Virus record (IMG/VR): IMGVR_UViG_3300043399_000272
Span: 124,001 to 188,000 of that record
DNA: 64,000 bases
Direction: 5' to 3' (one strand)
The notes below the pieces were generated by a model, which saw nothing but the letters and a program-made list of their open reading frames with translations, made no database searches and was not told where the DNA came from. How positions within the stretch are numbered: position 1 is the stretch's first letter; each line of letters opens with the position of its first letter. The position numbers and the translations under genes are program-made. This document shows positions 10,042 to 28,644 of this stretch, in pieces.

Positions 10042-10661
10042 TGTCACAGACCATGATTCCGATTCAAATTGAAGGCTTTATTAAGATCCATGATCCTAAT
10101 ACAGGCGAAGTATTAGTGGACAAGAAAAATGCTATCCACTATGAAAATATTAGTGTAGCGATAGCACAAACACTAAGCAACCGAGGTTTTGGTGCTATTT
10201 ACAAAATGGCTTTTGGTAACGGTGGATCCAGCGTTGACTCAACTGGTATAATCACGTACTTGCCACCGAATACAACAGGTGAAAATGCTAGTTTATACAA
10301 TCAAACATATGCCAAAGTTGTCGATGATACAAACATTTTAAACTTTAATCCTACATTAAACAAGATGACAGTCGCACACTCTTCTGGTAAAGTTTATACT
10401 GATATTATTGTTCAATGTTTGTTAGATTACAATGAACCATCAGGACAAGACGCATTTGATAATGCAACATATTCAGATTCTACATTTGTGTTTGATGAAC
10501 TTGGTTTATTATCATATAACGGAACTGATAATGCTGGTGTAGAACTAACAAAATTGTTAACACATGTAATTTTTCACCCAGTTCAAAAGAGTTTGAATAG
10601 ACAAATACAAATTGACTACACAGTTAGAATTCAAAGTTTGACTAACTTAGTAACAGTATAA
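10041..10661 (+). CDS. Virion structural protein (tail/baseplate)
   Basis: MAFGNGG...FDELGL...IDYTVRI pattern typical of phage tail-associated proteins; structural context. Confidence 0.6.
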   Translation: MSQTMIPIQIEGFIKIHDPNTGEVLVDKKNAIHYENISVAIAQTLSNRGFGAIYKMAFGNGGSSVDSTGIITYLPPNTTGENASLYNQTYAKVVDDTNILNFNPTLNKMTVAHSSGKVYTDIIVQCLLDYNEPSGQDAFDNATYSDSTFVFDELGLLSYNGTDNAGVELTKLLTHVIFHPVQKSLNRQIQIDYTVRIQSLTNLVTV

Positions 10662-12848: not shown

Positions 12849-12849
12849 T

Positions 12850-13788: not shown

Positions 13789-13791
13789 TTT

Positions 13792-14745
13792 ATGACATAC
13801 GCTAAAAACAGTAAAATTACAGCCGCTGACTACAACAGTTTGGTTTTAGATGTAAACAAAGTCTATTCAGTGGGTTTTGCTGAGACCGGTTTAGGTCAAA
13901 CTGCATTGACTCAAATCAGTGAGGGCAACACGGTTGATAATACTGAATGGGATAATCTAGGAGATACAATAACTAAAGTAGCGGCACACCAGGGCACCGC
14001 TATAACTACTATACCCTCAATAAATGAAGGTGATCTTATACAATATCTGTCATCGATAGAAAATGGCAAGAATGCAATTCTTAACAAGAATTGGAAAGCA
14101 GCAGCGCAAGGTTCTACAACTACTGTAACGACCCCGTTTTCTTCTAGTTGGAGTAATTCATTAACGTTTACACACATAATAACCTTTGCTTCAGGTGACG
14201 CTGCACGTTATTTTTTCAATGCCGGCGGACAAATCGCAATGAGCTTTCAAAAAAATGGCTCTGCACCAATGGATATAGTTTGGCAAAATTTAATATCTAA
14301 AATGGGTACATTAGTAATTAGTGCAGGTGCAAAAACAGGTAGTCCAACAGCAACTGTTGCGGGCACCGCATATACTGGATTTACGCAAATTAGTAGTTCT
14401 TCTATTAAAACCCTAGGTAGATCAGTGTACCAAACCGATTACGGATATTTTAGATTATCATCAGTTGATTCTGTTTTATATTCACAAACTGCACAAACCA
14501 CTACAGCTACTACTGGATACGGTGTTTCCTACATTAAAGTAAGTGCAAAGGCTAACGGACCTAGAGGAATTAACGGCGACAACGGTTCTACTATTACTAT
14601 CACTACAATTTGGGATGAAGTCCCCAATGGCTTAGTAGCATCTGCAGGTACGTTTACTACTGTCACTATCAGACCTCCTAGCACAGCTAACATAAATAAT
14701 ACTTGGGGAATGGTTACTGTATCTGGATTCGTTACCGGCTCATAA
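13792..14745 (+). CDS. Virion structural protein, paralog 3 of 3
   Basis: Same ARYFFNAGGQI and DEVPNGL motifs. Confidence 0.65.
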   Translation: MTYAKNSKITAADYNSLVLDVNKVYSVGFAETGLGQTALTQISEGNTVDNTEWDNLGDTITKVAAHQGTAITTIPSINEGDLIQYLSSIENGKNAILNKNWKAAAQGSTTTVTTPFSSSWSNSLTFTHIITFASGDAARYFFNAGGQIAMSFQKNGSAPMDIVWQNLISKMGTLVISAGAKTGSPTATVAGTAYTGFTQISSSSIKTLGRSVYQTDYGYFRLSSVDSVLYSQTAQTTTATTGYGVSYIKVSAKANGPRGINGDNGSTITITTIWDEVPNGLVASAGTFTTVTIRPPSTANINNTWGMVTVSGFVTGS

Positions 14746-14769
14746 AATTTTCACCCAACACTTCTTCAG

Positions 14770-14775
14770 TAAATA
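14770..14775 (+). promoter_or_regulatory. T4-late-like promoter core TAAATA (representative; also 9882, 28068, 29628, 29707, 32133, 36610, 37409, 50604, 51794, 53724, 54006, 56515 on +; 31124-31129 and 51779-51784 on -)
   Basis: The hexamer recurs in short intergenic gaps before structural/late genes and resembles T4 TATAAATA. Confidence 0.7.
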
Positions 14776-14780
14776 TTCAG

Positions 14781-15086
14781 ATGAATACTGAAGATTTGAT
14801 AAAAGAAGCCAAAGCCAGGTTTCATCACAACTACCAAAAAATACAATTATCACAAAAATACAATAGTAAATTGTTGTTCGCCTCTCAGGGCGGACTTTGG
14901 GCAGCAGGCCCAGAATTATTTGGAACACTACATTGTCTAACATCAGATGAAGTTGTGTTATTAGATAACTATAAAAATCCAGTGAAAATAAAACGAGATG
15001 AATTGCGTGTAAAAGCAATCGAAGTTTATGAAGCTGTCATGCGAGAGTGGCATGCTGAATATGAGTCATTGAAGAATAATAGATGA
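14781..15086 (+). CDS. Hypothetical protein (start revised to ATG 14781)
   Basis: MNTEDLIKEAKARF... lies 5 nt after TAAATA; ATGA overlap with the next gene. Confidence 0.6.
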   Translation: MNTEDLIKEAKARFHHNYQKIQLSQKYNSKLLFASQGGLWAAGPELFGTLHCLTSDEVVLLDNYKNPVKIKRDELRVKAIEVYEAVMREWHAEYESLKNNR

Positions 15087-15862
15087 AGGGCGTTCTCCTT
15101 TTTGCATTTAATAGTCCTACCGTAGACTATTTTAGTTTAGCTGTATATACTGCAAAACGAGCCAATCGATTTTTGGGCTTACCTGTATCGGTAGTTACAG
15201 ATAAAAATACTGATTTATCACTGTATGACTATAAGTTTGATAACGTGTTTTTAGTTAGCTCAGACTCTACCAATACAAAGAATAAAGACATTTGGATAAA
15301 CAAAGGTAGATACCAAGCATATGACCTTTCCCCATATGATGAAACGTTACTAATTGATGTAGATTACCTAATAAACTCTGACAGACTATTAACTATATTT
15401 GATATATACGATGATTTCATGTGTCCCAAAGAAGCATCATATGTTTTGTATGAAAATCAACCAGATGAAATGTTAAGTCAAAAATCACATCAGTCGTTGT
15501 GGGCTACTGTCATTGCTTTTAAGAAAACTAAAAAAGTAAAACAAATTTTTGAATGCATGAAAATGGTTCAAGAAAACTATAGCTACTATGTACAGCTACA
15601 TAATATTTTAGGATACACGTACAGAAATGATTTTGCATTAACAATTGCATTGAATATTGTTAATGGTCAAACAGAAAATTCTGTAAATTATCTGCCTTGG
15701 GATTTGCTTCACGTGACAAAGGATGTAAAAATTCTTAGAAAAACAGATACATCTTATGTTGCAATAGAAGATATGACCGATAAAAAGCGTTATTGTATGT
15801 TGAACGATACTGACTTTCATTGCCTAAATAAAGATACTTTCATTGGACTAATTAATGAATAA
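15083..15862 (+). CDS. Nucleotide-diphospho-sugar transferase (GT-A)-like protein
   Basis: KGVLLFAFN start; SPYDETLLIDVDY DxD motif; RNDFA. Confidence 0.6.
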   Translation: MKGVLLFAFNSPTVDYFSLAVYTAKRANRFLGLPVSVVTDKNTDLSLYDYKFDNVFLVSSDSTNTKNKDIWINKGRYQAYDLSPYDETLLIDVDYLINSDRLLTIFDIYDDFMCPKEASYVLYENQPDEMLSQKSHQSLWATVIAFKKTKKVKQIFECMKMVQENYSYYVQLHNILGYTYRNDFALTIALNIVNGQTENSVNYLPWDLLHVTKDVKILRKTDTSYVAIEDMTDKKRYCMLNDTDFHCLNKDTFIGLINE

Positions 15863-16667
15863 AGGATTTGTAATCTTAGCCCAAAATACAATTAGCACTA
15901 ACTACGTTGAATGTGCTGAGGCTTTAGCCTATTCGATTAAAACAGTAATGCCTAACGTAAGTGTTACTTTAATATCTAACGAGCATGTTACTTCTACTGT
16001 GTTTGATAATATAGTTTCATTACCTCACGGTGATACTGTACCTAACTCTGAATGGAAACTAAGCAATGACTGGCAAGTGTACGAAGCAAGCCCCTACGAA
16101 TACACTATCAAACTGGAAGCTGACATGTATATTCCTGCGAATATTGAATACTGGTTTGATATATTAAAAGATAGAGATATAAACGTATCTTCGACTATAC
16201 GTGATTACAAAAATCAACAGTCTAACGTGAGAGTATACCGACAATTCATTGATGATAACAAACTACCCGATGTTTATAACGCCATCACGTACTTTCGTAA
16301 ATCAGATATTGCTAAACAATTCTTTTCAATTGTAAGAGATGTGTTTGAAAATTGGGACAAGTACAAAGAAATATTTGTATGTAACGCTGATGAAACCGCG
16401 ACTACAGATTGGGCATATAGTATAGCATGCCATATTTTAGGTGTAGAAAACACGACAATGCCTCGCTTCACAGAGTTCAGCATGATTCACATGAAGCAAT
16501 ACATTAACAACTTGATGACCGAAGACTGGACAAATGAATTAGTCTATGAGTTCACTAAACCATTAAGAATTCACACGTTTACTCCTAATTACCCAGTTCA
16601 TTATCATATTAAATCATTTGGGAAAAAATTAAAGGACAATTATGACAGAAATGCGTCTTTACTATGA
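15855..16667 (+). CDS. GT-A glycosyltransferase-like protein (paralog of preceding)
   Basis: KGFVILAQN; SPYEYTIKLEADM (ExD); TTD; HYH at the C-terminus. Confidence 0.6.
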   Translation: MNKGFVILAQNTISTNYVECAEALAYSIKTVMPNVSVTLISNEHVTSTVFDNIVSLPHGDTVPNSEWKLSNDWQVYEASPYEYTIKLEADMYIPANIEYWFDILKDRDINVSSTIRDYKNQQSNVRVYRQFIDDNKLPDVYNAITYFRKSDIAKQFFSIVRDVFENWDKYKEIFVCNADETATTDWAYSIACHILGVENTTMPRFTEFSMIHMKQYINNLMTEDWTNELVYEFTKPLRIHTFTPNYPVHYHIKSFGKKLKDNYDRNASLL

Positions 16668-16941
16668 TGACAACGGTAACGTTTTGTATTATACTTGTGA
16701 TAAACCTGAGGGTAATTTTATTGTCATTGATAAAGATGTTTATGCCGAATGCAGATTTGACATAAAAGTAGTAGACGGTAAGATAGTCAAACTACAAGAT
16801 AGCATTGTTGTTGAAAAAATGACAATTGATCCTGATGGTACTTTGTGTAGCAGTGACGACATTAATATTATAGTCGATAGTAGCTACACTGGTAAAACAA
16901 CCAAGTGGAAATTAAAACAATATGAGTTCAAAAATAATTGA
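16642..16941 (+). CDS. Hypothetical protein
   Basis: ORF overlapping both neighbours within the operon. Confidence 0.55.
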   Translation: MTEMRLYYDDNGNVLYYTCDKPEGNFIVIDKDVYAECRFDIKVVDGKIVKLQDSIVVEKMTIDPDGTLCSSDDINIIVDSSYTGKTTKWKLKQYEFKNN

Positions 16942-17869
16942 TATAGCAGATTTAGATTGTATCTATCTAAGCTACGATGAACCGCAGAAAGAAGAATTTT
17001 GGCTTAAAATCAAAAACATGATTCCATGGGCACGTAGAGTAGACGGTGTGAAAGGATCAGATGCCGCACACAAAGCAGCAGCCGAAGAAAGTTTTACAGA
17101 TAGATTCATTCTTATTGACGGTGATAACTTACCGGATATGGAGTTTTTCAACTTAGCGTTAGACTTCACTAACAAAGACCCTATATATGAACAAGCACAA
17201 TATAGATGGAGAGCAAAGAATCACATTAATGGTTTACGTTACGGTAACGGTGGTATTAGTTCATGGACAAAAGAATACGTCATGAACATGAAAACTCACG
17301 AAGCTAGTAACGGAGATAGTACAACGACAGTTGACTTTTGCTTAGACTATCAGAACAGTATATATTGGGCAATGCATGATTGTTATTCAACAACCTATCC
17401 TAATTACACACCATTTCAAGCATGGCGAGCCGGATTCCGTGAAGGTGTTAAGATGTGTTTAGTGGGAGGTAATGTTCCTGAAATAAATGATTTCAAACGC
17501 AATGTTGCAAGTAGAAATATGAACAATCTAACAATATGGCATAATGTAGGAGCTGACGTTGAAAATGGTTTATGGGCTATTTACGGAGCTAGATTAGGCA
17601 CATACTTAACGATGTTGCAAGATTGGGATGTTAACAAAGTACAATGGTTTGATAACTTTACTGAACTATGGGACCGATATGGCAATGTAGATCCACTAGA
17701 ACAGTCTGATATTATCGGTGAAAAATTAAAAGACAAACTTGGATTACCGATGTGTGTATTGTCACCAGAACAGTCTATTTTCTTCAAAAGACACTATAAT
17801 GCCGATAAGTATAATCTCGGACCATTAGTAAGAGAAATCGATGTTATTAGAAAGATTGAGGGTTGGTAA
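16922..17869 (+). CDS. Glycosyltransferase-like protein
   Basis: DCIYLSYDEP...VDGVKGSDAAHKAAA...FILIDGDN (DxD)...AWRAGFREGVK; homologous to the C-terminus of 25631-27964. Confidence 0.6.
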   Translation: MSSKIIDIADLDCIYLSYDEPQKEEFWLKIKNMIPWARRVDGVKGSDAAHKAAAEESFTDRFILIDGDNLPDMEFFNLALDFTNKDPIYEQAQYRWRAKNHINGLRYGNGGISSWTKEYVMNMKTHEASNGDSTTTVDFCLDYQNSIYWAMHDCYSTTYPNYTPFQAWRAGFREGVKMCLVGGNVPEINDFKRNVASRNMNNLTIWHNVGADVENGLWAIYGARLGTYLTMLQDWDVNKVQWFDNFTELWDRYGNVDPLEQSDIIGEKLKDKLGLPMCVLSPEQSIFFKRHYNADKYNLGPLVREIDVIRKIEGW

Positions 17870-19251
17870 TGACAAAGAACCTAAATCAAATGAACATAGA
17901 AAATATGTTGACCAGAATGACTGAGATAGAGAGCAAACTTGGCAGCAAAACTGTATGTACTGCAAAATGGTTACAAAGTACAATTTATCTAATGAACGGG
18001 TTTACTCACAGTTGTCACCACCCCAGCACACATAAAATACCTATTAGCGAAATAAAAAGAAGTCCTAGCGCACTACACAACACGGAATATAAAAAACAAG
18101 TTCGCGGCAAAATGCTCAACGGTGAACAACCGGATGAATGCAGATATTGCTGGAATATCGAAAACTTGGGTACCGGTAACATAAGTGATAGGACGTACAA
18201 GAGTGCAAACGTTGAATGGAGTTACTCGTTTTTAGATAGAGTTATAGATACACAAGACACAGGAGATGTAGACCCTACCTATCTTGAAGTTGCTTTTGAT
18301 AACACTTGTAATTTTAAATGCATGTATTGTACTCCTGACATTAGCAGCAAATGGATGGAAGAAATAGAACAGCATGGCCCATATTCAGTTGGGGTAGGTA
18401 ATATTGAATGGTTGCAACTTTCTGGAAAGATGCCAATTCCTCAAAGAGAATATAATCCATACGTTGACGCATTTCACGAATGGTTTCCTAAAGTTAAAGA
18501 AAACTTAACCAATTTTAGAATTACTGGTGGTGAGCCACTGTTGAGCAAAAACATGTGGCGCACATTAGACGAATTACTAAAAGAACCTAACCCTAATTTG
18601 ACGTTGGGCATTAATAGTAATATGGATGTTCCTGACAATTTAATCGATAAGTTAATTCAGTATATTCATGAACTGAAGAAAAATGTTAAACAAGTCGAAA
18701 TTTATACTAGTTGCGAAGCACACGGTGAGCAAGCTGAATATATTCGTTATGGTATGAAGTATGAACGTTTTATGGAAAACGTCAATAAGATTTTGACACA
18801 AACTGACACCCGAGTTAATTTTATGGTTACATTCAATGCATTGAGTATAACTAGCTTTACTAAGTTTTTAAGTGACATGTATGATTTGCGAGTAAAATAT
18901 AACGAAAATGATAGTATCAATCGAATTCCATTAATGATTAGTTACTTGCGTTGGCCACAGTTCCAAGATGTTAGAGTATTGCCTAATGAAATTAAACAGC
19001 GTTACATTGATGAAATCATAACTTTTATGAAACAACGGGATCGTAACAACAGTAGCAACCGTGCTGGGAGATTTTATTTGGAAGAAATAGATCAAGCCGA
19101 AAGATTGAAAAATTTTATGTATACTGATCCGGATAATATAGATACGTTGCGTGAACAATTTAGAAGTTTCTATAAAGAATATGATTCCAGAAAAAACACA
19201 AACTTTATAAAAACTTTCCCAGAATTAAAAGATTTTTACTTAGGATTATAA
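17869..19251 (+). CDS. Radical SAM protein with N-terminal Twitch/SPASM-like Cys cluster
   Basis: CNFKCMYC, TGGEP; N-terminal CTAKW..SCHH..ECRYCW; TAATG-coupled start. Confidence 0.9.
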   Translation: MTKNLNQMNIENMLTRMTEIESKLGSKTVCTAKWLQSTIYLMNGFTHSCHHPSTHKIPISEIKRSPSALHNTEYKKQVRGKMLNGEQPDECRYCWNIENLGTGNISDRTYKSANVEWSYSFLDRVIDTQDTGDVDPTYLEVAFDNTCNFKCMYCTPDISSKWMEEIEQHGPYSVGVGNIEWLQLSGKMPIPQREYNPYVDAFHEWFPKVKENLTNFRITGGEPLLSKNMWRTLDELLKEPNPNLTLGINSNMDVPDNLIDKLIQYIHELKKNVKQVEIYTSCEAHGEQAEYIRYGMKYERFMENVNKILTQTDTRVNFMVTFNALSITSFTKFLSDMYDLRVKYNENDSINRIPLMISYLRWPQFQDVRVLPNEIKQRYIDEIITFMKQRDRNNSSNRAGRFYLEEIDQAERLKNFMYTDPDNIDTLREQFRSFYKEYDSRKNTNFIKTFPELKDFYLGL

Positions 19252-20771
19252 TGCCAAAGAAGCCAGAAGAAACATACCAACAATATAGAGATAGAGTAAT
19301 CAACTCTATAAGCCCTAGCTTCTGCGGAGCTAAGTGGTACAATGCTACTATATGGTTAGGATCTGGAACAACTGCTAGTTGCCATCATCCACCTGCACAC
19401 AAAATTCCTATTGAAGAAATTAAGAGAAACTACAAAGCACTTCATAATACAGAATATAAAAAACTCGTTAGAGAACAGATGCTCAGAGGTGAAAGACCCA
19501 CAGAGTGTGATTACTGCTGGCGTATTGAGGATTTGGGCGACGATAAAGTTAGCGATAGAGTTTACAAATCAATTATATATTCTGATGACAAGTTAATAAA
19601 AGCAAAAGACATATTTGGTAGTAAATTAGATGTTGATTTGGAAACACTAGAAATTGCGTTTGATGCTAATTGTAACTTTGCATGTAGCTATTGCAATCCT
19701 AGTTTCAGCACAACATGGATGAGTGATGTTAAAGTCAATGGCCCTTATCAGAATTTAGTTAGTGACGGTGGCGGTGCGTACCAACAAGACGGTAGCTGGG
19801 CACAACCGTATGGATTAAAGAATGAAGGTAATCCATACATTGAAGCATTTTGGAAATGGTGGGAAAGCGACCTACAACATTCACTAAAAGAATTGAGAAT
19901 TACAGGTGGCGAAGCCACTATGAGTCAAGACTTTTGGAAGTTGCTAGATTGGTGGAACGAACATCCAGAGTGCCAGGTAAGTTTAGCCATTAACAGCAAC
20001 TTGGGAACAGTTACACAATTAACAGAAAGATTGTGCAAAGCTACCCATAGTCATAAAAACTTCCATTTATATACAAGTAACGAAGCACACGGAAAACATG
20101 CCGAATACATTCGTGACGGATTGAACTATGAAAATTGGTTAAAGAATCTAACATACATGATAGAAAATGGTAACTGCAAAGGTACGCATGTTATGATGAC
20201 TATTAATAGTCTTTGTTTGTTTAGCATTACTGATTTTATGGATGACATGATTAAACTCAAGAAAAAGTATGGAAGGAATCATGCTATGATGAGTTTTAAC
20301 ATTCTACGTTTCCCTAGTTTTATGAGTGCAGTTACATTACCTGAATCTATATGCAGAGCACAAGCTGATAAATTGGAAACATGGGTTAAAGATAAAACTG
20401 ACCTACACCAAATGGAGCGTGACGGAATCGCTAGACTAATTGCATATCTTAGAGAAGTACGTGAGGGTCACAGCCATACATCAAGTATTGAAAGTAGAGA
20501 ACGTGACTTTAAAACTTTCTTTATGCAATATGACACTAGAAGAAAGAAAAACTTTTTAGCAACATTTCCTGAATTAACTGAGTGGTATAACAATATACCT
20601 ATCACTAAACTAGAACCACTTAAAGAGTTCAAAGACGGTGATAGTACAAAGGGCTGGTCTCATGTGCAATTAGAGTTAGTCAAAAGAGCAAATGACGAAA
20701 AGTGGATATTAAAACCTAGTAATGTAAATCCAGGTGGAGAAAACTATGAGCGACCAAAAGAAGGTATCTGA
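19251..20771 (+). CDS. Radical SAM protein with Twitch/SPASM-like domain
   Basis: CNFACSYC, TGGEA; CGAKW..SCHH..ECDYCW. Confidence 0.9.
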   Translation: MPKKPEETYQQYRDRVINSISPSFCGAKWYNATIWLGSGTTASCHHPPAHKIPIEEIKRNYKALHNTEYKKLVREQMLRGERPTECDYCWRIEDLGDDKVSDRVYKSIIYSDDKLIKAKDIFGSKLDVDLETLEIAFDANCNFACSYCNPSFSTTWMSDVKVNGPYQNLVSDGGGAYQQDGSWAQPYGLKNEGNPYIEAFWKWWESDLQHSLKELRITGGEATMSQDFWKLLDWWNEHPECQVSLAINSNLGTVTQLTERLCKATHSHKNFHLYTSNEAHGKHAEYIRDGLNYENWLKNLTYMIENGNCKGTHVMMTINSLCLFSITDFMDDMIKLKKKYGRNHAMMSFNILRFPSFMSAVTLPESICRAQADKLETWVKDKTDLHQMERDGIARLIAYLREVREGHSHTSSIESRERDFKTFFMQYDTRRKKNFLATFPELTEWYNNIPITKLEPLKEFKDGDSTKGWSHVQLELVKRANDEKWILKPSNVNPGGENYERPKEGI

Positions 20772-22062
20772 CTATTTTTGTGTCGCGCCTTGGACTCATA
20801 CTTATCTAAGTCCCCAAAGTGAACGTAGATTGTGTTGTGCTAGTAGAGAAACTGCTAGTTTTCAAAAACAGTACATCGATAGCGGTGACAAATATAATGA
20901 ATACAGCCCCGTAACACTGGAAGAACACTGGAATAGTGAACACATGAAAAGTGTTCGCCGCCGTATATTGAATGGAGAAAGTATCCCAGAATGTCAAGTT
21001 TGCAATAATAACTTATTGAATCTATACACATATCGTCAATATTTTACTAACAATCTTTTCCCACATAAAGTTGATGAAATATTATCATCCACTGATGAAA
21101 CTGGTTATACTACAATGAAACCAATTTCATTTGATTATCGCATTTACAATCTATGTAATTTTAAGTGCAGAATGTGCGGAGAACAGCTATCTAGTTCATG
21201 GGAAACCGAAAAGCGTAAAATGAATATGTGGTCACCTACACATGACCGATGGATGCTTCCTGAAAATAAAGCTAAAATAGAAAACTTTCAACAAACTGTT
21301 GCTGAAAATGAGTTGTGGGAAGCGGTAAAGAACGGAACAATAGAAGAAATTTACTGGGTCGGTGGAGAACCATTAATGTACGAGATTCATTGGGACATAA
21401 TGAAATATCTTGTAGAAAATGATTTAGCAAAAAATGTAGTTGTTAGATATAATACCAACCTTAGTAAAACTTCATTTAAAGGTGTAGAGTTATATGATTT
21501 ACTACCGCACTTTAAGAAAGTAAACATCTGTGCTAGTATGGATGCCACCGGAGAAGTTGCAGAATATATTAGAACAGGCCTTGATTGGGATATTTGGTTA
21601 GATAACTTTAAACGCGGAATCTTTTTAAACGACATTTATGGCATGGATGCAATGGTATTAGATGTTACACTAACATTGCCCGGTTTGTTAGATATGAAAA
21701 ATTTAATTGATTTAGCAGTTGAATTAAAAGTTAAAAGTTATGTAAAGATATGTTTTGACTTTACCCCTAGCGCAATAATGAGTCCTATGTGTGTACCTAG
21801 AAATATATTAAATCCGATATTGGACGATTTAATAGAATACGAACAGACACATGGAAATGAATTCACTAAAATATATAAAGAAACTTTCAACGATATGAAG
21901 ACCAGACCGAACTTTAGTGACAAGTATCCTGATATTAATAAAGGGCTATCTGACGGTAAACATAGATATATTCGGATTGATGAATATAGAAAAGAAAAAG
22001 ATTTATTATTGAATATTTTAAGTCGGAATAAAGAATTATCAGATTGGTATAAAAATATATGA
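20746..22062 (+). CDS. Radical SAM protein with Twitch/SPASM-like domain
   Basis: CNFKCRMC, VGGEP; CVAPW..RLCC..ECQVC; ATG 20746 follows GGAG. Confidence 0.9.
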   Translation: MSDQKKVSDYFCVAPWTHTYLSPQSERRLCCASRETASFQKQYIDSGDKYNEYSPVTLEEHWNSEHMKSVRRRILNGESIPECQVCNNNLLNLYTYRQYFTNNLFPHKVDEILSSTDETGYTTMKPISFDYRIYNLCNFKCRMCGEQLSSSWETEKRKMNMWSPTHDRWMLPENKAKIENFQQTVAENELWEAVKNGTIEEIYWVGGEPLMYEIHWDIMKYLVENDLAKNVVVRYNTNLSKTSFKGVELYDLLPHFKKVNICASMDATGEVAEYIRTGLDWDIWLDNFKRGIFLNDIYGMDAMVLDVTLTLPGLLDMKNLIDLAVELKVKSYVKICFDFTPSAIMSPMCVPRNILNPILDDLIEYEQTHGNEFTKIYKETFNDMKTRPNFSDKYPDINKGLSDGKHRYIRIDEYRKEKDLLLNILSRNKELSDWYKNI

Positions 22063-23213
22063 GTAAGACATTTTGTCCATTACCTTGGATGCATTTAGCG
22101 ACACATCCTGAGGGTAAAGCTACATTATGCTGTGTGAGCGACCATACTAACAACATGTCTGTTGCAAGAACCAACGGTAAAGTTTTAAATCTTAACAGAA
22201 ATAAAGTAATTGAAATAATGAACAGCGATTATTATGTTGAGGTCAGAAATCAGATGCGTCAGGGCATTAAGCCAAAATCTTGTTTGAGATGTTACAATGA
22301 AGAAGATATGGGCATTGTTAGTAAACGAGAATTAGAAACTTCCAGATTTGGCACTGATTACAGAGATAATAATGGTATAATAGATCCTAATCTAAAGTTT
22401 ATTGAGTTGCGCCTGGGCAATTTATGTAATGTTAAATGTAGAACCTGTAACCCTGCATCTAGCACTCAATGGATTACTGAGTATAACAAACTACAAAATG
22501 AATTATCTTTTGTCACACACTATGATAGTAAGATTAATACAGATTGGACACAATCAGATCAATTTTGGGAAGATTTATTAGAAAACAGTAAAGACGTTGA
22601 GCTAATATATATCAACGGTGGAGAACCAACATTAGTAGAAAAACACTGGAATTATTTAGAAAGATTAATTGATAAAGGACTGAATAAACAAGTTAAATTG
22701 TGGTACAGTATTAACATGACAAATGTACCTGACAAACTAATTAACATTTGGAAACAATTCAAAGAAGTAGAAGTTCATGGCAGTGTAGATGATCTTGGCC
22801 AGCGCAATAGTTACATACGAAAAGGAACTAAATGGGAAGATGTTGAGAAAAGTCTAAAAAAAATAAAAGAAAATGATTGGATAAAATTTAGTGTCACTCA
22901 AACAGTAAGTTGGATGAACATCTATTACGTAGATGAATTCAAAAAATACTTTGATAATTTGAATATACCAACACAAACAAATCTGGTTTATGATCCTAAA
23001 TTTTATAGTATATGCATCCTACCAGAACATATCAAATACCAATTACAGGATAAGATATCTAACTTTGGTAATTTGTTAAATCAAGTTTCTACTGACATAA
23101 ATACAGAGTTATTTAATCAGGGGATGATATACAATAAATGGTTGGACACCCATCGAAATGAAAGATTTTCTGAAATATTTACTGAATGGTCCGCTGTACT
23201 TGGATACAAATGA
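22059..23213 (+). CDS. Radical SAM protein with Twitch/SPASM-like domain
   Basis: CNVKCRTC, NGGEP; CPLPW..TLCC..SCLRC. Confidence 0.9.
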   Translation: MSKTFCPLPWMHLATHPEGKATLCCVSDHTNNMSVARTNGKVLNLNRNKVIEIMNSDYYVEVRNQMRQGIKPKSCLRCYNEEDMGIVSKRELETSRFGTDYRDNNGIIDPNLKFIELRLGNLCNVKCRTCNPASSTQWITEYNKLQNELSFVTHYDSKINTDWTQSDQFWEDLLENSKDVELIYINGGEPTLVEKHWNYLERLIDKGLNKQVKLWYSINMTNVPDKLINIWKQFKEVEVHGSVDDLGQRNSYIRKGTKWEDVEKSLKKIKENDWIKFSVTQTVSWMNIYYVDEFKKYFDNLNIPTQTNLVYDPKFYSICILPEHIKYQLQDKISNFGNLLNQVSTDINTELFNQGMIYNKWLDTHRNERFSEIFTEWSAVLGYK

Positions 23214-23214
23214 A

Positions 23215-24054
23215 ATGAGTTATTTACTAACATCACCGTTCGGGAATGAACACTCGATAAATAAAAGTTTCGCTCATACTGATATTAAAAGTAATTTTAA
23301 TACAAACAAATTGTTGTTTGGTCCGGAATGGATTTGGTCTACCATTCCTATAAATTACAATCACAATTCTCATGGTTATAGAATGGACAAGGAGTTAGAT
23401 GAAGTAGATTTATCTAACTATATTGCCTTTTTTGGATGTAGTTTTACAGTAGGTATTGGTTTACCGTTAACATATACATTTGCATATAAATCAGCAAATC
23501 AGTTAAATGTAGACTATGTTAATGGCGCTGTAAGCGGATCTTCCTGTGACTATGCATTTCATAATATTGTGAAATTAATTTCAACTGCGAAGATAAAACC
23601 GAAAGCAATTATTATAAATTGGCCAGAGATAACTAGAACTTTTTATTGGAAAAACAATACCATGGAATTTTATCTAGTAAACGCAGATTTAGGCTCATAT
23701 TATTGGAAAAATGCATATAGAGCATTTCTTATGGAAGAATCACATCTGTATAATAGATTTGAATTTATCCGATCTACTGTAAAACTGTTATGTAGCGCAT
23801 TTAATATTAGACTTTTTGAATTTACTACATATCAATCGGATTTAAAAACTTTTTTAAAAAAATATCCTGACATTGGATTTACACATATAGTAGATCAAGA
23901 GAATAAACTAGATCCAACTTCTGTGGAATATTTAAATAATTTTAGTGCCAGGGACGTTTTGACAAAAAATGGCAGTCATTATGGTTATCATCCGGGAATA
24001 TACTTTCATAATCAGGCAACAAAACAGATAGTAGAGTGGTTTAACAATGTTTAA
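23215..24054 (+). CDS. SGNH/GDSL hydrolase-like protein
   Basis: NSHGYR, FFGCSFTVG, N.AVSGSS and a C-terminal D...HPG..H. Confidence 0.55.
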   Translation: MSYLLTSPFGNEHSINKSFAHTDIKSNFNTNKLLFGPEWIWSTIPINYNHNSHGYRMDKELDEVDLSNYIAFFGCSFTVGIGLPLTYTFAYKSANQLNVDYVNGAVSGSSCDYAFHNIVKLISTAKIKPKAIIINWPEITRTFYWKNNTMEFYLVNADLGSYYWKNAYRAFLMEESHLYNRFEFIRSTVKLLCSAFNIRLFEFTTYQSDLKTFLKKYPDIGFTHIVDQENKLDPTSVEYLNNFSARDVLTKNGSHYGYHPGIYFHNQATKQIVEWFNNV

Positions 24055-24148
24055 TTTTTTTAAAAAAATCTTTTGTAAGGTAATATTTGATATTAGATAT
24101 CGTAAAAGAATCAAAAAGCTAAAGAAAGCAGATCCGTTTATTTACTAA
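24047..24148 (+). CDS. 33-aa basic peptide upstream of the carbamoyltransferase
   Basis: MFNFFKKIFCKVIFDIRYRKRIKKLKKADPFIY fills the gap exactly and is coupled to both neighbours. Confidence 0.55.
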   Translation: MFNFFKKIFCKVIFDIRYRKRIKKLKKADPFIY

Positions 24149-24149
24149 T

Positions 24150-25631
24150 ATGAATTATATTGGAATATCATCAGGGTTTCACGATGCATCCGTAACTGTT
24201 CTTAAAGACGGACAAATTCTATTTGCGGGTCACAGTGAACGTTATAGTAAAATAAAAAATGACAAGAATTTAGACGTTGACCTCATCAAAGATGCATTAA
24301 GTTATATTGATGGCCCGCACGAATTGCATTATTATGAAAAACCCTGGTTAAAGGTTTTGCGTCAATGGTACGCTGGACAAAAAACTCATTGGTCTAATAT
24401 ATTTACTAGCAATGTGATCGGTAAGAGTTATCACGAAATGTTAGGGAAAAAGACTATTCATACACACAGTCATCATTTAAGCCATGCTGCTGCAGGGTTT
24501 CAAACTAGCCCATTTAATGAAGCAACTATTGTCGTTATTGATGCTATCGGTGAGTTTGATACTGTAACTATTTGGAGTGCTCATTATGATTATAATCACA
24601 ATGCGGTATACAAAAAACTTTATACAAAACGCTATCCAAATAGTATCGGTCTTTTCTATAGCGCAGTTACTAAGCGTGTAGGGTTGAGACCCAATGATGA
24701 AGAATACATCACTATGGGAATGTCTGCTTATGGTTCACCTGTAGTTATAAGTGAGTTATGTTCTGAAGTTTTTGATGACTTAAATGAATTAAAATTTAGA
24801 AAAAATTTACATATAGGGTTTGACGAAGATTTCTTACCAAATGCAAAAGATGAAGATATTGCCCGCTCAGCACAAGATATAGTCGAACACTCAATAATGA
24901 ATATTATGCAAAAAGCTAGAACATTGAGTGAAAGCAATAATCTTGTCTATGCAGGTGGTGTAGCATTAAATTGTTTAGCTAATCGTTTGATTGGAAAATA
25001 TTTCTCTAACCTTTGGATAATGCCCAATCCAGGTGATGCTGGCTCTAGTTTAGGAGCAGCATGTTTAGGTTACAGAAAAAAAGTAGAATTTAATTCAGCT
25101 TTCTTGGGTCACGAAATTCAAGGTGAATATCCAGTTCATAATATCTTGCAAGGATTGTTGACAGACAAGATAGTAGGTGTTGCTAGTGGTAAGGCTGAGT
25201 TCGGCCCCAGAGCATTTGGTAATAGAAGTTTATTAGCAGATCCTAGAAGTAAAGACATAAAAGATCAGGTAAACGAAATTAAGCGCAGACAGAAGTTCAG
25301 ACCTTTCGCACCTGTTATATTAGAAGAACATGCACCTAACTATTTCATTATGCCATTAAATTGGAAGAATTCACGTTATATGCAAGTTGTTGCTAAGTGC
25401 AAGAATCCTGAACGATTCCCTGCAATCGTGCATGTAGATGGCACTAGCAGAGTGCAAACTGTTCCTAAAGACGGATCAGGAATTCGTAAGCTATTAGAAG
25501 AATGGCATAAAAAGACTGGGTGCCCAATGTTATTGAACACTAGTTTAAACATTCGAGGCGAACCAATGGTTAATGATCGGGCAGATGCGGATAGATTTGA
25601 ACAGCTATATAATGTTAAAGTCTATAGTTAA
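24150..25631 (+). CDS. Carbamoyltransferase, NodU/CmcH family
   Basis: HDAS, ERYS..KND, HH.SHAA, DAIGE, GGVALN, GDAGSS.GA, EFGPRA.GNRS, FRPFAP, H.DGT.R.QTV, LLNTSLN..GEP. Confidence 0.95.
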   Translation: MNYIGISSGFHDASVTVLKDGQILFAGHSERYSKIKNDKNLDVDLIKDALSYIDGPHELHYYEKPWLKVLRQWYAGQKTHWSNIFTSNVIGKSYHEMLGKKTIHTHSHHLSHAAAGFQTSPFNEATIVVIDAIGEFDTVTIWSAHYDYNHNAVYKKLYTKRYPNSIGLFYSAVTKRVGLRPNDEEYITMGMSAYGSPVVISELCSEVFDDLNELKFRKNLHIGFDEDFLPNAKDEDIARSAQDIVEHSIMNIMQKARTLSESNNLVYAGGVALNCLANRLIGKYFSNLWIMPNPGDAGSSLGAACLGYRKKVEFNSAFLGHEIQGEYPVHNILQGLLTDKIVGVASGKAEFGPRAFGNRSLLADPRSKDIKDQVNEIKRRQKFRPFAPVILEEHAPNYFIMPLNWKNSRYMQVVAKCKNPERFPAIVHVDGTSRVQTVPKDGSGIRKLLEEWHKKTGCPMLLNTSLNIRGEPMVNDRADADRFEQLYNVKVYS

Positions 25632-27964
25632 TGATTACACAAGACGAACTACAACGCCGACAAGATTTGTGGGCACAGGGGTATTGGGAAGTACCCGAAA
25701 ATTTAGATACAAGTAACTTCAATTTCGATTGGCGCCCTGATCCATGGGATAGACCATATATTCATCAGTTCGGGACACAATGGCAAAAGACAGGTGGACC
25801 TAGATTTGTTGTCCCTCAAAATGAAGGGATAAAATATCAAACTAGTCAAACAGCAATAAGAGTACAAAACGAGAATGATAGAAGCTGGCGCCCAATGCTA
25901 GCTAATATTGAAATGGATTACTCTTGGCACCCTGACGAAACAGATCCTCCCTTTATATATGTGTTCGGCAATCAGCATTATGGTCCTGAACTCATGCCTA
26001 CAGTGATGTACAGAGTTAAAGGCGCTACTGAAAAGAAGTTTGTTGCTGATGTTACAGCGAAACTATTACCTAATAAAGAAAAGTTCAAATCACTGACAGA
26101 AGTACAGTTTGATTTTGATTATTCTTGGGTACCACATCCATATGACCCTCCCTACAACTATGTGTTCGGTAACCAACATCATAATAGTAAAGATATGCCC
26201 ACACTGATGTATTGTGTTAGCGGAGCAGTAACTGAGAAATATATAGACGATGTAAAAGCTACACTAATCGCTGATAAATCACGATGGGTAATTCCCGATC
26301 ATATAGATGATACAGAGTTTGACTACAGTTGGTATCCCAGTATACACGAACCCAAACAAACGTACCAATTTGGAACTCAATGGCAGAAGACAGGTGGACC
26401 TAAATTAGTTATAGGAGATGGTGTAACGAAGTTCATGGATTTTATGCGTGTTGTTAAATTAGCTGATCCTAATAACAGAGCATGGCGCCCAATGTTTAAT
26501 GTTGAGTTTGATTATAGTTGGCACCCAGATGATACAGAACCTGCTTATAATTATGTATTTGGCAATCAGTGGCACAGCAGTAATAAAATGCCTACTGTCA
26601 TATATAAAGTCAAAGGTGCAACAGCTACAAAATACATTGATGCTTTAAAAGCAATATTGAAACCAGACTTAACTAATTGGAATATTCCTGATGATGTTGA
26701 TGTAACACATTTTGATTTTAGTTGGGTACCTGACCCCAATGAGCCACCATACATATATCAGTTCGGTACGCAATGGCAAAAAACAGGCGGACCTCAGTAC
26801 ATAGTTAAAGGAGCTGAACATACTAAGTTCGTAGACATTCAACGAGCAATAAAGTTACCCAATTTACGCAATTGGAGAATCATTGAACCTATTGTTAAAG
26901 ATACCTTTGATTTTAGTTGGCATCCTGACGCAACAGAAGAAAACTACACGTATGTTTTCGGTAATCAGTATTTTGATGCTGAGAAAATGCCTACACTGAT
27001 GTACAAAAGTAAACAGACTGTTGGTAATAAGTATGTAACTGATATTAAGGCAAATCTGTACATTACAGTTATAAACTATACGGATTCAATTTATGAAAGT
27101 GTAATCGACAGTAAGTTTGAAACTGCATATGGATTGTTTACGAAGCCTGGTACTGAGATTGACCTTAGTAAAATTATCAGTGGTAAAATTGATACACTTC
27201 ACATTGCAGGTGATAGTGCTATTGTACCTAGAAATTGTAGAATGTTAATACATGATAAGTTAACTGATTATTATAATGTTGTAAGACATTACGATAGAGA
27301 AACTAAGCCGCTAGACATTATATTCTTCAGTAATGGTGAAGCATGTGCAGATGAAAACATGGATCATCTATTGAGTCTAAATCTACCGAATAGAATAGTT
27401 CATATCAAAGGTGTGAATGGTCGTGTGGCAAGCCAACATGCGGCAGCACAAGCTAGCAATACTGATTGGTATTTCTTAGTAAACGCTAAGTTACAAGTTA
27501 ACAAAGATTTTGATTTTAATTGGCAACCTGATATACTAAAGTCACGTAGACATTATATCTTTAGAGCAACCAATCCAGTTAACGGATTAGAATATGGACA
27601 CCAAGCTATTGTTGCTAATAACAAAATACTGACACTGAACACAGTAGTTCGAGGTCTTGACTTTACTATGGATAGCGCACATGAAGTTGTCAATATCAAT
27701 AGCGGTATCAGTAGATACAATACAAGCGAATGGGACACATACAGAACAGCATTCCGTGAATGTATTAAATTGAAGCATTATGGTGATAGTGAGAGTCTAG
27801 CTAGACTAAATATATGGCTAACAATAGCAAATGGTGATTTTGCCCAATATAGTTTACTTGGAGCTAAAGACGCTGTTGAATATTACAACTCAGTCAATGG
27901 TGATATTGAAAAACTAAAATTAAGTTATGATTGGGCCTGGATTAAAGAAAGGTTTGAAAAATGA
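25631..27964 (+). CDS. Repeat protein with C-terminal glycosyltransferase-like domain
   Basis: Seven FD(Y/F)SW.P...P.Y.Y.FG.Q repeats; the C-terminus (DIIFFSNGE..GVNGR..S..AAA..NGL.YG..AFRE..K) resembles 16922-17869. Confidence 0.6.
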   Translation: MITQDELQRRQDLWAQGYWEVPENLDTSNFNFDWRPDPWDRPYIHQFGTQWQKTGGPRFVVPQNEGIKYQTSQTAIRVQNENDRSWRPMLANIEMDYSWHPDETDPPFIYVFGNQHYGPELMPTVMYRVKGATEKKFVADVTAKLLPNKEKFKSLTEVQFDFDYSWVPHPYDPPYNYVFGNQHHNSKDMPTLMYCVSGAVTEKYIDDVKATLIADKSRWVIPDHIDDTEFDYSWYPSIHEPKQTYQFGTQWQKTGGPKLVIGDGVTKFMDFMRVVKLADPNNRAWRPMFNVEFDYSWHPDDTEPAYNYVFGNQWHSSNKMPTVIYKVKGATATKYIDALKAILKPDLTNWNIPDDVDVTHFDFSWVPDPNEPPYIYQFGTQWQKTGGPQYIVKGAEHTKFVDIQRAIKLPNLRNWRIIEPIVKDTFDFSWHPDATEENYTYVFGNQYFDAEKMPTLMYKSKQTVGNKYVTDIKANLYITVINYTDSIYESVIDSKFETAYGLFTKPGTEIDLSKIISGKIDTLHIAGDSAIVPRNCRMLIHDKLTDYYNVVRHYDRETKPLDIIFFSNGEACADENMDHLLSLNLPNRIVHIKGVNGRVASQHAAAQASNTDWYFLVNAKLQVNKDFDFNWQPDILKSRRHYIFRATNPVNGLEYGHQAIVANNKILTLNTVVRGLDFTMDSAHEVVNINSGISRYNTSEWDTYRTAFRECIKLKHYGDSESLARLNIWLTIANGDFAQYSLLGAKDAVEYYNSVNGDIEKLKLSYDWAWIKERFEK
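25690..27040 (+). repeat. Seven ~65-aa intragenic repeats of two subtypes, order A-B-B-A-B-A-B (boundaries approximate)
   Basis: Type A QFGTQWQKTGGP occurs three times; type B VFGNQ..MPT..Y occurs four times. Confidence 0.8.
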
Positions 27965-28056: not shown

Positions 28057-28077
28057 CCAAAACTGCATAAATACTTT

Positions 28078-28644
28078 ATGCGAATCAAAGACTTGACAGA
28101 ATCCAGTGGCTATAGCCTTAGGGGCAGTTTTACTAGTGACTTAGTGACTAGTAAAGTTTGGTTATTAGATGAACTATCCAAGATATCAGATAGTTTTAGC
28201 ACTATATATGTGTTAGGTTCTTGGTATGGTAACACCGCCATTCTGTTAGAACTACTTAATAATATCGACTACGACACCCTAATCAATGTTGAATCAAACA
28301 AGAAATTTTTAAGTGGTAGCAAAAAACTATTGGATAATTTAGGGGCAACCAACATACAATATATGTTAAAGGATGCCAATACCCTAGATTATCGTCAGTT
28401 GGGCAATGACGGTGTAGTTATTAATACTAGCCTTACGGACATGCAGGGTACAGATTGGTTTGATAATATACCACCTGGTACATTAGTTGTAATGCAAGCA
28501 AGAGATAATGACCCGGGAGAGAAATTTTCTAGCCCAAAAGATATTGTCAGAAAATTTCCAGTTCGTGTGTTATATCAGGGGTCAAAGAATCTAGAAGATC
28601 CTGAGGCTAAATATAATAGATTTATGGTAATTGGAATCAAATAA
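28078..28644 (+). CDS. Class I SAM-dependent methyltransferase-like protein with capsid-targeting-like N-terminus
   Basis: IYVLGSWYG, INVE, VINTS, RFMVIG; N-terminus MRIKDLTES. Confidence 0.5.
   Translation: MRIKDLTESSGYSLRGSFTSDLVTSKVWLLDELSKISDSFSTIYVLGSWYGNTAILLELLNNIDYDTLINVESNKKFLSGSKKLLDNLGATNIQYMLKDANTLDYRQLGNDGVVINTSLTDMQGTDWFDNIPPGTLVVMQARDNDPGEKFSSPKDIVRKFPVRVLYQGSKNLEDPEAKYNRFMVIGIK

Follow-up and report, generated by a model that had tools for sequence, protein, structure and literature searches.

A tail-fibre-linked module of predicted sugar-transferring and sugar-tailoring enzymes in an uncultivated freshwater phage

Introduction

Phages may carry enzymes that modify their own virions, their DNA or the surface of the host. 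Here, we asked what is made by a tightly packed set of predicted glycosyltransferases, radical SAM enzymes and a carbamoyltransferase that lies right after the tail-fibre genes of an uncultivated 260-kb freshwater phage (IMG/VR record IMGVR_UViG_3300043399_000272). The window, i.e., the whole stretch of DNA analysed, comprises 64,000 nucleotides (positions 124,001 to 188,000 of that record), and all coordinates below are window positions. The original prediction described about 13 abutting or overlapping genes in a "late operon" at 14770-27964, and proposed that they build an unusual glycan on Ser/Thr/Asn-rich virion proteins encoded upstream, or else modify DNA or the host surface.

Results and Discussion

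The enzyme block follows virion protein genes

The block is preceded by the following genes:

21..9878 (+), giant 3285-aa virion-type protein, the start of the conserved fibre block
10041..10661 (+), 206-aa protein of phrog_11259
10690..11883 (+), tail-fibre-like protein with a C-terminal autoproteolytic chaperone domain
11892..14745 (+), three tandem Ser/Thr/Asn-rich paralogs (11892-12848, 12850-13788, 13792-14745), here called the STN family, the proposed acceptor proteins
14770..14775 (+), TAAATA motif, 5 nt before the ATG at 14781

Segments homologous to the giant protein precede the module in 64 of 80 loci that were collected with STN as the seed, and the syntenic PA5oct protein gp355 is a virion structural protein found by ESI-MS/MS. 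The 206-aa protein (PHROG hit at E 5.5e-69) is present at the same position in 65 of these 80 loci. The tail-fibre-like protein carries the Pfam Peptidase_G2 IMC domain and matches virion structural PHROGs; the location beside tail genes was confirmed. Its N-terminus is shared with the N-terminus of ORF355 of the cultured Ralstonia phage RsoM2USA (E 7e-7).

The three STN paralogs are 37-41% identical to one another, and their S+T+N content is 33-37%, in comparison to 21.8% genome-wide. The family has 2697 representatives, some of which are fused to Gly_rich_2, FN3 or Calx-beta domains, and in RsoM2USA the STN domain is fused to a fibre N-terminal module. The AF2 model (pLDDT 86) showed no known fold. 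The family is structural, as its PA5oct homolog gp360 (hhalign probability 99.6%, E 5.9e-25) was detected in virions by ESI-MS/MS (PMC7318152). However, high S/T/N content is common in fibres in any case, and the STN proteins have neither a conserved Ser/Thr column nor an excess of N-x-S/T sequons.

The TAAATA motif is depleted overall (70 found, 99.6 expected) but enriched in intergenic DNA: 33% of its copies lie in the 10.7% of the genome that is non-coding, and there are 73 copies within 60 nt upstream of 269 genes. Since it also precedes pstS and DHFR, it does not show late timing, and any promoter function remains putative.

Gene content of the block

The ORF listing and independent JGI gene calls both gave 12 plus-strand genes from 14781 to 27964, with overlaps of 1-56 nt and a single gap of 95 nt (24054 to 24150). 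The predicted figure of about 13 is therefore 12, or 13-14 if the two genes that follow are added:

14781..15086 (+), small conserved protein sm1 (101 aa)
15083..15862 (+), GT8-like glycosyltransferase a, GT8a (259 aa)
15855..16667 (+), GT8-like glycosyltransferase b, GT8b (270 aa)
16642..16941 (+), small conserved protein sm2 (99 aa)
16922..17869 (+), predicted GT-A-fold protein (315 aa) of a virus-only family
17869..19251 (+), radical SAM rS1, N-terminal twitch, subtype C.AKW...SCHH
19251..20771 (+), radical SAM rS2, same subtype as rS1
20746..22062 (+), radical SAM rS3, subtype C..PW...LCC
22059..23213 (+), radical SAM rS4, same subtype as rS3
23158..24054 (+), SGNH-like protein (start at 23158 or 23383)
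24150..25631 (+), NodU/CmcH-type O-carbamoyltransferase (493 aa)
25631..27964 (+), 777-aa protein with at least six ~65-aa repeats (F-D-x-S-W-x-P ... F-G-N/T-Q) followed by a C-terminal GT-A-like domain
28078..28644 (+), 188-aa conserved partner of the second GT-A domain
28644..29528 (+), weakly assigned GNAT-like acetyltransferase

Four GT-like domains had been predicted, and four were found. The GT8b family profile hits glycogenin-1 (GT8) over residues 4-106 at E 5.6e-5, and the protein matches phrog_1903. GT8a gave no direct Pfam or PDB hit and is assigned only as a weak paralog of GT8b (E 2e-7), although D92 and D94 are invariant in the family alignment. The AF2 model of the 16922-17869 protein (pLDDT 84) has the PBCV-1 capsid glycosyltransferase A64R as its best Foldseek hit, and in a structural comparison in which VIA Z reached 9.8 all top hits were GT-A enzymes. 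Its Atlas cluster is named "GT2-like", and D66 and D68 are nearly invariant. The C-terminus (561-746) of the 777-aa protein is its paralog, while a Pfam search with this protein returned no hit. No family hit was obtained for sm1 or sm2; sm1, always directly after STN, is present in 75 of the 80 STN-seeded loci, and sm2 lies between GT8b and the GT-A gene in 65 of them.

All four radical SAM genes hit PF04055 and score 307-348 bits on NF033640 N_Twi_rSAM (rS1 343, rS2 307, rS3 311, rS4 348), whose cut-off is 170. CxxxCxxC and four N-terminal Cys (C6, C25, C75 and C78 of the 384-aa protein) are invariant in a 19-sequence alignment, and the two predicted subtypes are visible in the translations. 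rS2 is 38.5% identical to rS1, rS3 has a SPASM hit at the N-terminus, and rS4 has 1147 relatives with only generic source annotations. We found no reported function for any member of NF033640.

The carbamoyltransferase carries both Carbam_trans_N and Carbam_trans_C (E 1e-36 and 4e-50), matches phrog_1601 at E 3e-104, has NovN, GdmN and TobZ as its nearest solved structures and is 47% identical to RsoM2USA ORF199. The SGNH assignment rests only on an indirect structural lead: Pfam and NCBIfam searches gave no hit, the structure of an Atlas neighbour matches SGNH/AlgX-type proteins at TM 0.52-0.62, and two public gene calls differ in the start. The 188-aa protein has no family or PDB match. However, its homologs directly follow the second GT-A gene in RsoM2USA (ORF347) and in one of the compared loci, L002, and are fused to it in another, L030; thus the module should extend to 28644. 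The GNAT-like protein (Pfam Acetyltransf_1, E 6.8e-5) was not seen in related loci, and its membership is uncertain.

In summary, the observation itself was confirmed, with the gene number corrected to 12.

The transferases are linked to the STN gene in related phages

Synteny across relatives had been named in advance as a check on this locus. The module recurs in hundreds of environmental phage contigs. Of the loci seeded with GT8b, 73/73 have STN upstream, 66/66 have GT-A and 65/66 have a radical SAM gene. Of the STN-seeded loci with at least 5.5 kb of room, 50/54 have GT8a, GT8b and GT-A downstream. So, the enzymes were never seen without STN in these comparisons, but STN occurs without the enzymes (loci L074, L091, L093 and L112, and PA5oct). 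The gene order is retained in the distant phage RsoM2USA, whose STN is only ~25% identical, next to its tail sheath and baseplate genes. Nevertheless, the loci compared belong largely to one phage clade, so shared ancestry explains part of the synteny.

The number of radical SAM genes varies from 0 to 5. rS1 is the most conserved of them (54 of 80 loci), while rS4-like copies number one to five in related loci. The RsoM2USA ortholog of rS2 (54% identical) lies three genes from the carbamoyltransferase there. The record of our phage also holds a second cluster, with six more radical SAM genes and a paralog of the 188-aa protein.

Radical SAM orthologs lie among NDP-sugar genes

In other phages (loci of the type called L016 here), orthologs of rS1 and rS2 lie among an SDR (NDP-sugar) epimerase/dehydratase, an RmlC-like epimerase, a TPP enzyme, a methyltransferase and GT7-lectin fusions; in L016, the rS2 ortholog is followed by the RmlC-like epimerase. 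This points to sugar chemistry, and, together with the GT8-like and GT-A-like domains and the O-carbamoyltransferase, a carbohydrate pathway is well supported.

We also considered whether the radical SAM enzymes act directly on the STN proteins, as peptide maturases do (epimerisation, cross-links, hydroxylation-like chemistry), with glycosylation only a side activity. The core of the family profile also matches the peptide-modifying enzymes SkfB and YydG, SPASM/twitch enzymes are often peptide maturases, and a substrate encoded next to its enzyme is the usual layout for such systems. An Atlas search also listed a "tSAM target Cys-rich repeat" family near the STN query, but only at a score of 0.70, which is below the tool's own threshold for a lead. 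However, one STN paralog has no Cys and the others have 2-3, no RRE/PqqD-like domain was found in the profile searches, and the rS1 and rS2 orthologs of the NDP-sugar clusters occur without STN. We thus regard this reading as unlikely.

The enzyme set (twitch radical SAM like BtrN, carbamoyltransferase like TobZ/NovN, glycosyltransferases) also resembles aminoglycoside and nucleoside antibiotic clusters, and could make a diffusible modified sugar, nucleoside or aminoglycoside-like compound during infection. Yet no scaffold-forming enzyme, transporter or resistance gene is present in the cluster, and the strict linkage to a fibre gene is unexplained by this model, which seems very unlikely.

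DNA modification and host-envelope remodelling

A phage NodU-type enzyme makes 5-carbamoyloxymethylcytosine (Yang et al. 2021, PMC8670742), and phage GT-A enzymes glycosylate 5hmC; the carbamoyltransferase and glycosyltransferases of the cluster might decorate hydroxymethylated bases of phage DNA. In RsoM2USA, a DNA ligase gene lies next to the carbamoyltransferase/rS2 sub-module. However, the only thymidylate-synthase homolog in our record, which is estimated to be only 74% complete, is canonical (full-length ThyA match at E 1e-77 to 1e-83, with His147 and Asn177) and lies beside DHFR, about 23 kb from the carbamoyltransferase. No TET/JBP passed the search threshold. In PMC8670742, the 5hmC carbamoyltransferases sit next to Asp177 homologs, whereas carbamoyltransferases flanked by glycosyltransferases lay on unmodified contigs. 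Moreover, the cluster is in the structural block. The DNA option is therefore weakened, and we consider it very unlikely.

Alternatively, the enzymes could make modified nucleotide sugars or act on host LPS or capsule precursors at the inner face of the membrane, changing the surface of the infected cell, for example to exclude other phages or to stop progeny adsorbing to debris. GT8 enzymes are typical LPS-core transferases, NodU-type enzymes act on envelope-related glycans, and host O-chain modification was the reading given to a similar GT8 plus radical SAM content beside the tail fibres of pelagimyophages (PMC7029224). The second cluster of the same genome holds a GtrA/DUF2061-like membrane protein and an Asp/Asn beta-hydroxylase. 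On the other hand, no protein of the window cluster has a transmembrane segment, no flippase, polymerase or initiating transferase is present, and the cluster sits inside the structural block on the same strand. This model does not predict the linkage of GT8b to the STN gene. It is the strongest of the alternatives, but still an unlikely one.

A putative fibre-decoration module

The reading that we tentatively prefer, although with less than even confidence, is an accessory fibre-decoration module: a soluble, cytoplasmic pathway that would build and tailor an unusual glycan on virion surface proteins before assembly, the most likely acceptors being the STN-family fibre proteins encoded just upstream. 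In this view, the two GT8-like and two GT-A-like transferases would attach and extend sugars from nucleotide-sugar donors. The four radical SAM enzymes would abstract a sugar C-H, leading to oxidation, epimerisation, deoxygenation or branching of the donor sugars or of the attached glycan. The carbamoyltransferase would O-carbamoylate a sugar hydroxyl, and the SGNH-like protein, the 188-aa protein and possibly the GNAT would add or remove further groups. The core (STN, sm1, GT8a, GT8b, sm2, GT-A, rS1) is conserved while the tailoring set varies between phages, which would give lineage-specific glycans.

Our analysis shows the gene content, the family memberships, the synteny and the virion location of an STN homolog, whereas the glycan itself, every chemical step, the acceptor and the timing of expression are inferred. 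The assignments of GT8a, the SGNH-like protein and the 188-aa protein are weak or indirect, and a complex prediction of STN with sm1 and the two GT8-like proteins gave no answer. Thus, the interpretation originally offered is partly supported: of its three targets the virion proteins gain the most support and DNA loses support, while the "late" timing of the operon remains an inference, and the likeness of the radical SAM enzymes to the sugar-oxidising BtrN holds for the twitch domain only.

Comparison with known systems

In virus-encoded virion glycosylation, i.e., chlorovirus PBCV-1 A64R and partners and mycobacteriophage capsid/tail-tube O-glycosylation (Freeman et al. 2023, cited in PMC12801897), GT-A transferases likewise sit next to or near structural genes and act in the cytoplasm on virion proteins. 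Those systems have no radical SAM enzymes and no carbamoyltransferase, and the acceptor proposed here, by inference only, is a fibre protein of a Gram-negative-type jumbo myophage. In the serine-rich repeat adhesin loci of Gram-positive bacteria, the gene for a Ser/Thr-rich surface adhesin is followed by several cytoplasmic glycosyltransferases, including GT8 members, that glycosylate it before export. These loci are bacterial, use dedicated SecA2/Y2 export and are not known to include radical SAM or carbamoyl tailoring; no homology to the STN family was found.

Among sugar-acting radical SAM enzymes, the twitch auxiliary-cluster domain is homologous to that of BtrN (E 5e-7) and the core matches BlsE, viperin and MoaA, but the twitch domain is N-terminal here rather than C-terminal, and overall identity is low. 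The 5-hydroxymethylcytosine carbamoyltransferase (PMC8670742) is phage-encoded and has the same Pfam architecture, yet here there is no adjacent Asp177 thymidylate-synthase homolog, dCMP deaminase or MazG-like gene, and the neighbours are GT-like and radical SAM genes.

Finally, in the host-recognition cluster of pelagimyophages and cyanomyophages (PMC7029224), glycosyltransferases (GT8 most common) and radical SAM cassettes lie among tail-fibre genes, with variable content between close relatives, and Nol-like carbamoyltransferases are common in the same phage groups. The host O-chain modification put forward in that paper was a proposal without a test. Those are T4-like phages with no fixed gene order reported, whereas here a fixed core, from STN to rS1, is conserved.

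Gene content of the module

The window is bases 124001-188000 of a single 260,148-bp virus record, which was recovered from a freshwater metagenome and is estimated by CheckV to be 74% complete. Its large terminase is 50% identical to that of the Pseudomonas jumbo phage PA5oct, however, a nucleotide search of the phage collection with the 13-kb region found no relative among deposited phages. From 14781 to 27964 there are 12 genes on the + strand, which abut or overlap by 1-56 nt with a single gap of 95 nt, and independent JGI gene calls agree with this arrangement. Thus, the gene cluster described in the original prediction is really present, although it should be extended beyond the end coordinate proposed there (see below). 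The features of the window to which we refer by coordinates are as follows.

15083-15862 (+), GT8a, weak paralog of the GT8-like protein GT8b
15855-16667 (+), GT8b, GT8-like protein
16922-17869 (+), protein with a predicted GT-A fold (GT-A)
23158-24054 (+), putative SGNH-like protein
24150-25631 (+), NodU/CmcH-type O-carbamoyltransferase, from domain content
25631-27300 (+), repeats at the start of a 777-aa protein with a C-terminal GT-A-like domain
28078-28644, protein whose homologs follow the second GT-A gene in related loci
32168-33172, PstS-like phosphate-binding protein gene (phrog_5385, PBP_like_2), an auxiliary metabolic gene typical of aquatic phages
47832-49401, DHFR followed by a canonical thymidylate synthase (48502-49401)
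49648-50610 and 53028-53726, an NAD-dependent sugar epimerase/dehydratase and a class I methyltransferase

Four genes of the cluster, rS1 to rS4, encode radical SAM enzymes. All four are clear members of NCBIfam NF033640 (N_Twi_rSAM, twitch domain-containing radical SAM protein), with whole-protein scores of 343, 307, 311 and 348 bits against the curated cut-off of 170 bits, and seven matches over this cut-off are found in the whole record. In an alignment of 19 sequences seven cysteines are invariant, namely C123, C127 and C130 of the CxxxCxxC motif, and the N-terminal C6, C25, C75 and C78. The N-terminal domain is homologous to the C-terminal twitch domain of BtrN and aligns to Pfam SPASM at residues 6-79 and 16-91. 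The two subtypes of radical SAM enzymes distinguished in the original prediction are real: rS1 and rS2 are 38.5% identical, while rS3 and rS4 are about 25% identical to everything else.

The product of 24150-25631 contains both domains of NodU/CmcH O-carbamoyltransferases, Carbam_trans_N (ASKHA-like) and Carbam_trans_C (YrdC-like), at 127 and 170 bits against gathering scores of 24 and 27, and its nearest solved relatives are NovN, GdmN and TobZ. The family profile of GT8b hits glycogenin over 103 residues (E 5.6e-5), but there is no Pfam Glyco_transf_8 hit, and GT8a is linked to this family only through its weak paralogy to GT8b, as a profile search of the PDB with GT8a gave nothing. PDB profile searches were equally negative for the GT-A family by sequence and for the family of 28078-28644. 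The structural model of 16922-17869 was confident (pLDDT 84) and all its structural matches are GT-A enzymes, among them the viral capsid-glycosylating A64R, STIV A197 and Mimivirus R699. This model aligns over residues ~5-162 at Z 8.2-9.8, values which are only modestly above the background level of the method, and D66 and D68 of the DxD motif are nearly invariant. The C-terminus of the 777-aa protein is a paralog of 16922-17869. The same protein starts with at least six repeats of ~65 aa in two alternating subtypes (FGTQWQKTGGP and FGNQ...MPT..Y), which match no Pfam family and might be a substrate-recognition domain for the attached GT-A domain. For 23158-24054 we obtained no Pfam or NCBIfam hit, and the SGNH assignment rests only on an indirect lead, i.e., the structure of an Atlas neighbour cluster that matches SGNH/AlgX proteins at TM 0.52-0.62.

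A second radical SAM cluster lies outside the window, at ~25,400-38,500 of the same record (locus L032:5441-18464). It holds a tandem double GT-A protein (a paralog of 16922-17869), a paralog of 28078-28644, six more radical SAM genes (three over the NF033640 cut-off and one with a C-terminal SPASM domain), a GtrA/DUF2061-like membrane protein and an Asp/Asn beta-hydroxylase. The related viral locus L030 is syntenic with this cluster. The record has ten PF04055 hits in all.

The proteins encoded upstream belong to a virion protein family

Upstream of the enzyme genes lie a 3285-aa protein, a phrog_11259 protein and a fibre with a Peptidase_G2 autoproteolytic chaperone domain, followed by three tandem paralogs rich in Ser, Thr and Asn (33-37% against 21.8% genome-wide), which we call STN proteins. 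The STN family is large, with 2697 representatives at 50% identity. Its predicted fold has no significant match in the PDB, either by Foldseek or by the wide VIA search (best Z 6.0), and only three uncharacterised viral proteins match it in BFVD. It is nonetheless a structural family. The STN profile matches PA5oct gp360 at an hhalign probability of 99.6%, and gp360 and its neighbours carry the ESI-MS/MS note that marks the 93 virion-associated proteins of PA5oct (PMC7318152). In the cultured Ralstonia phage RsoM2USA the STN domain is fused to the same N-terminal module as the fibre of the window, and long members of the family carry FN3, Calx-beta or Gly_rich_2 extensions. In two related contigs (L005:4884-5885 and L006:4907-5923) the STN homologs carry an inserted Gly-Tyr dipeptide repeat (GYGYGYG...) in the middle of the beta-sandwich domain.

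We also considered whether the richness in Ser, Thr and Asn itself indicates glycosylation. This idea was dropped, since there is no excess of sequons and such a composition is typical of fibres; moreover, STN proteins have no conserved Ser/Thr column. Complex prediction of STN with GT8a, GT8b and sm1 (a small conserved protein) gave no answer and counts neither way.

The enzyme genes are inherited together with STN

In order to assess whether the module is co-inherited, we scanned viral sequences with three different seeds. A scan seeded with rS1 found the ordered block phrog_11259, fibre, STN, sm1, GT8a, GT8b, sm2 (a second small conserved protein), GT-A and rS1 in several diverged lineages. 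A scan seeded with STN alone returned at least 584 matches, and of the 54 loci with enough downstream sequence 50 carry GT8a, GT8b and GT-A, and 49 carry a radical SAM. A scan seeded with GT8b returned at least 571 matches; all 73 loci with upstream room have STN, 66/66 have GT-A and 65/66 have a radical SAM. The linkage is therefore asymmetric: the enzymes were never seen without STN in these scans, whereas STN exists without the enzymes in four of these loci and in PA5oct, where the strand flips right after gp360. The number of radical SAM genes within about 8.7 kb ranges from 0 to 5.

RsoM2USA, the only cultured phage with the module, keeps the order from ORF355 (STN) to ORF347, next to its tail sheath and baseplate genes, while its carbamoyltransferase (ORF199) and rS2 ortholog form a separate small block (ORF199-203). 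In this block (L001:17036-21044) three DUF6071 paralogs (ORF200, 201 and 203) surround the rS2 ortholog and abut the carbamoyltransferase, and an ATP-dependent DNA ligase gene lies next door. A relation of DUF6071 to the SGNH-like protein of the window was suggested by the Atlas but was not significant by sequence. In RsoM2USA and in the related locus L002 a homolog of 28078-28644 follows the second GT-A gene, and in L030 it is fused to it, thus the module extends past the end proposed in the original prediction. Most of these loci belong to one broad clade, so part of the synteny reflects common descent; the retention in RsoM2USA and the asymmetry are the stronger points.

Among 185,579 species genomes, a scan with a narrow alignment of the radical SAM proteins found a single contig (L033, JAIEMA010000045.1, 71 kb) in a Bacteriovoracaceae MAG. 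It carries adjacent orthologs of rS3 (65% identical) and rS4 (48% identical) and a third twitch radical SAM, and is probably a phage contig binned into a bacterial MAG, or a hint at the host.

Possible transcription signals

The original prediction placed the cluster in a late operon downstream of a TAAATA. Compared with the T4-type late promoter (TATAAATA at -10 of late transcripts), only the TAAATA core is present at 14770, whereas the full octamer occurs 18 times in the genome. TAAATA (often ATAAATA) is depleted inside genes and enriched in intergenic DNA, being frequent 5-9 or 15-29 nt upstream of start codons (e.g., window 10664, 14770, 28068, 29707, 56515 and 58078), with 73 copies in the upstream 60 nt of 269 genes. 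It is a candidate promoter core, however, it has no extended consensus and also precedes non-structural genes such as pstS and DHFR, so that late timing remains an inference on present evidence. Scans for sigma-70 promoters and terminators were at the chance level. Two wastewater libraries labelled RNA-Seq hold scattered 151-nt contigs which are 97-100% identical to window 13792-19700, but they are probably DNA. The phage, or a near-identical one, is therefore not confined to the source lake sample.

Possible substrates and targets of the pathway

In our literature search we could find no published function for any member of NF033640, but the genomic context helps. In another class of viral loci (L015-L023, L007 and L029) there are no STN or GT8 genes, and orthologs of rS1 and rS2 (41-60% identical) flank an NAD-dependent sugar epimerase/dehydratase. 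These loci also contain an RmlC-like 3,5-epimerase, a TPP-dependent enzyme, a methyltransferase, a 2OG oxygenase and three GT7-lectin fusions, which is an independent association with nucleotide-sugar tailoring. In the phage studied here, the sugar epimerase/dehydratase and methyltransferase of the window, together with an RmlC-like cupin encoded elsewhere (genome 201493-201954), are possible suppliers of modified nucleotide sugars for the module. The family profile also matches BlsE, viperin and MoaA, which act on sugar or ribose substrates, but it matches the peptide enzymes SkfB and YydG as well. Radical SAM enzymes need a reducing cytoplasm, and none of the proteins of the cluster has a hydrophobic segment; the predicted chemistry is therefore intracellular and acts on soluble substrates.

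Modification of phage DNA is weakened as an explanation. The study that discovered 5hmC carbamoyltransferase found those enzymes next to thymidylate-synthase homologs with Asp at E. coli position 177, while carbamoyltransferases flanked by glycosyltransferases were on unmodified contigs (PMC8670742). We looked for such a homolog within about 3 kb of the carbamoyltransferase and found none. The only PF00303 match, in a record that is about 74% complete, is the thymidylate synthase at 48502-49401, about 23 kb away and beside DHFR; it is a canonical ThyA with His147 and with Asn177 in the ...LGLPFN... motif. The phage makes ordinary dTMP. No TET/JBP reaches the cut-off. Modification of the host envelope remains possible and was proposed for similar cassettes in pelagimyophages (PMC7029224), however, it does not explain the strict coupling to one fibre-protein family.

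We therefore favour, though only tentatively and at somewhat less than even confidence, glycosylation of virion fibre proteins with variable tailoring, and we are rather confident that the pathway is carbohydrate chemistry of some kind. The interpretation given in the original prediction, which left open virion proteins, DNA or the host surface as targets, is thus partly supported. What our analysis establishes is the gene content and family memberships, the gene linkage and the virion location of an STN homolog, whereas the enzymatic activities (including transfer of carbamoyl from carbamoyl phosphate to a hydroxyl group), the glycan, its acceptor and the timing of expression are inferred.

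A bolder reading, which seems possible but less likely than not, is that jumbo phages of a large environmental clade decorate their tail-fibre proteins with a phage-made glycan containing rare, carbamoylated sugars tailored by radical SAM enzymes, and that its composition would be diversified by gain and loss of twitch radical SAM genes. This would be the first virion glycosylation system in myophages of Gram-negative-type hosts and the first assigned function for the NF033640 family, for which it would also provide a tractable test system, and it would mean that phages diversify not only fibre sequence but also fibre glycans. If the reading is right, host recognition or virion stability in a widespread group of environmental jumbo phages depends on a post-translational glycan made by the phage itself, through chemistry not known from any virus (four to ten radical SAM enzymes per genome). 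It would add a new layer to host-range evolution, and it would also matter for phage engineering, because fibres expressed without the module might be non-functional. Even if the target turns out to be the host envelope or DNA, the strict linkage to one fibre-protein family and the variable radical SAM content still need an explanation.

Comparison with known systems

Virus-encoded virion glycosylation is known in chloroviruses and mycobacteriophages, and cassettes of GT8 and radical SAM genes beside tail fibres have been noted in pelagimyophages. What is new here is the fixed, widely conserved core tied to a defined virion protein family, the use of an uncharacterised N-terminal-twitch radical SAM family in variable copy number, and the combination with predicted O-carbamoylation.
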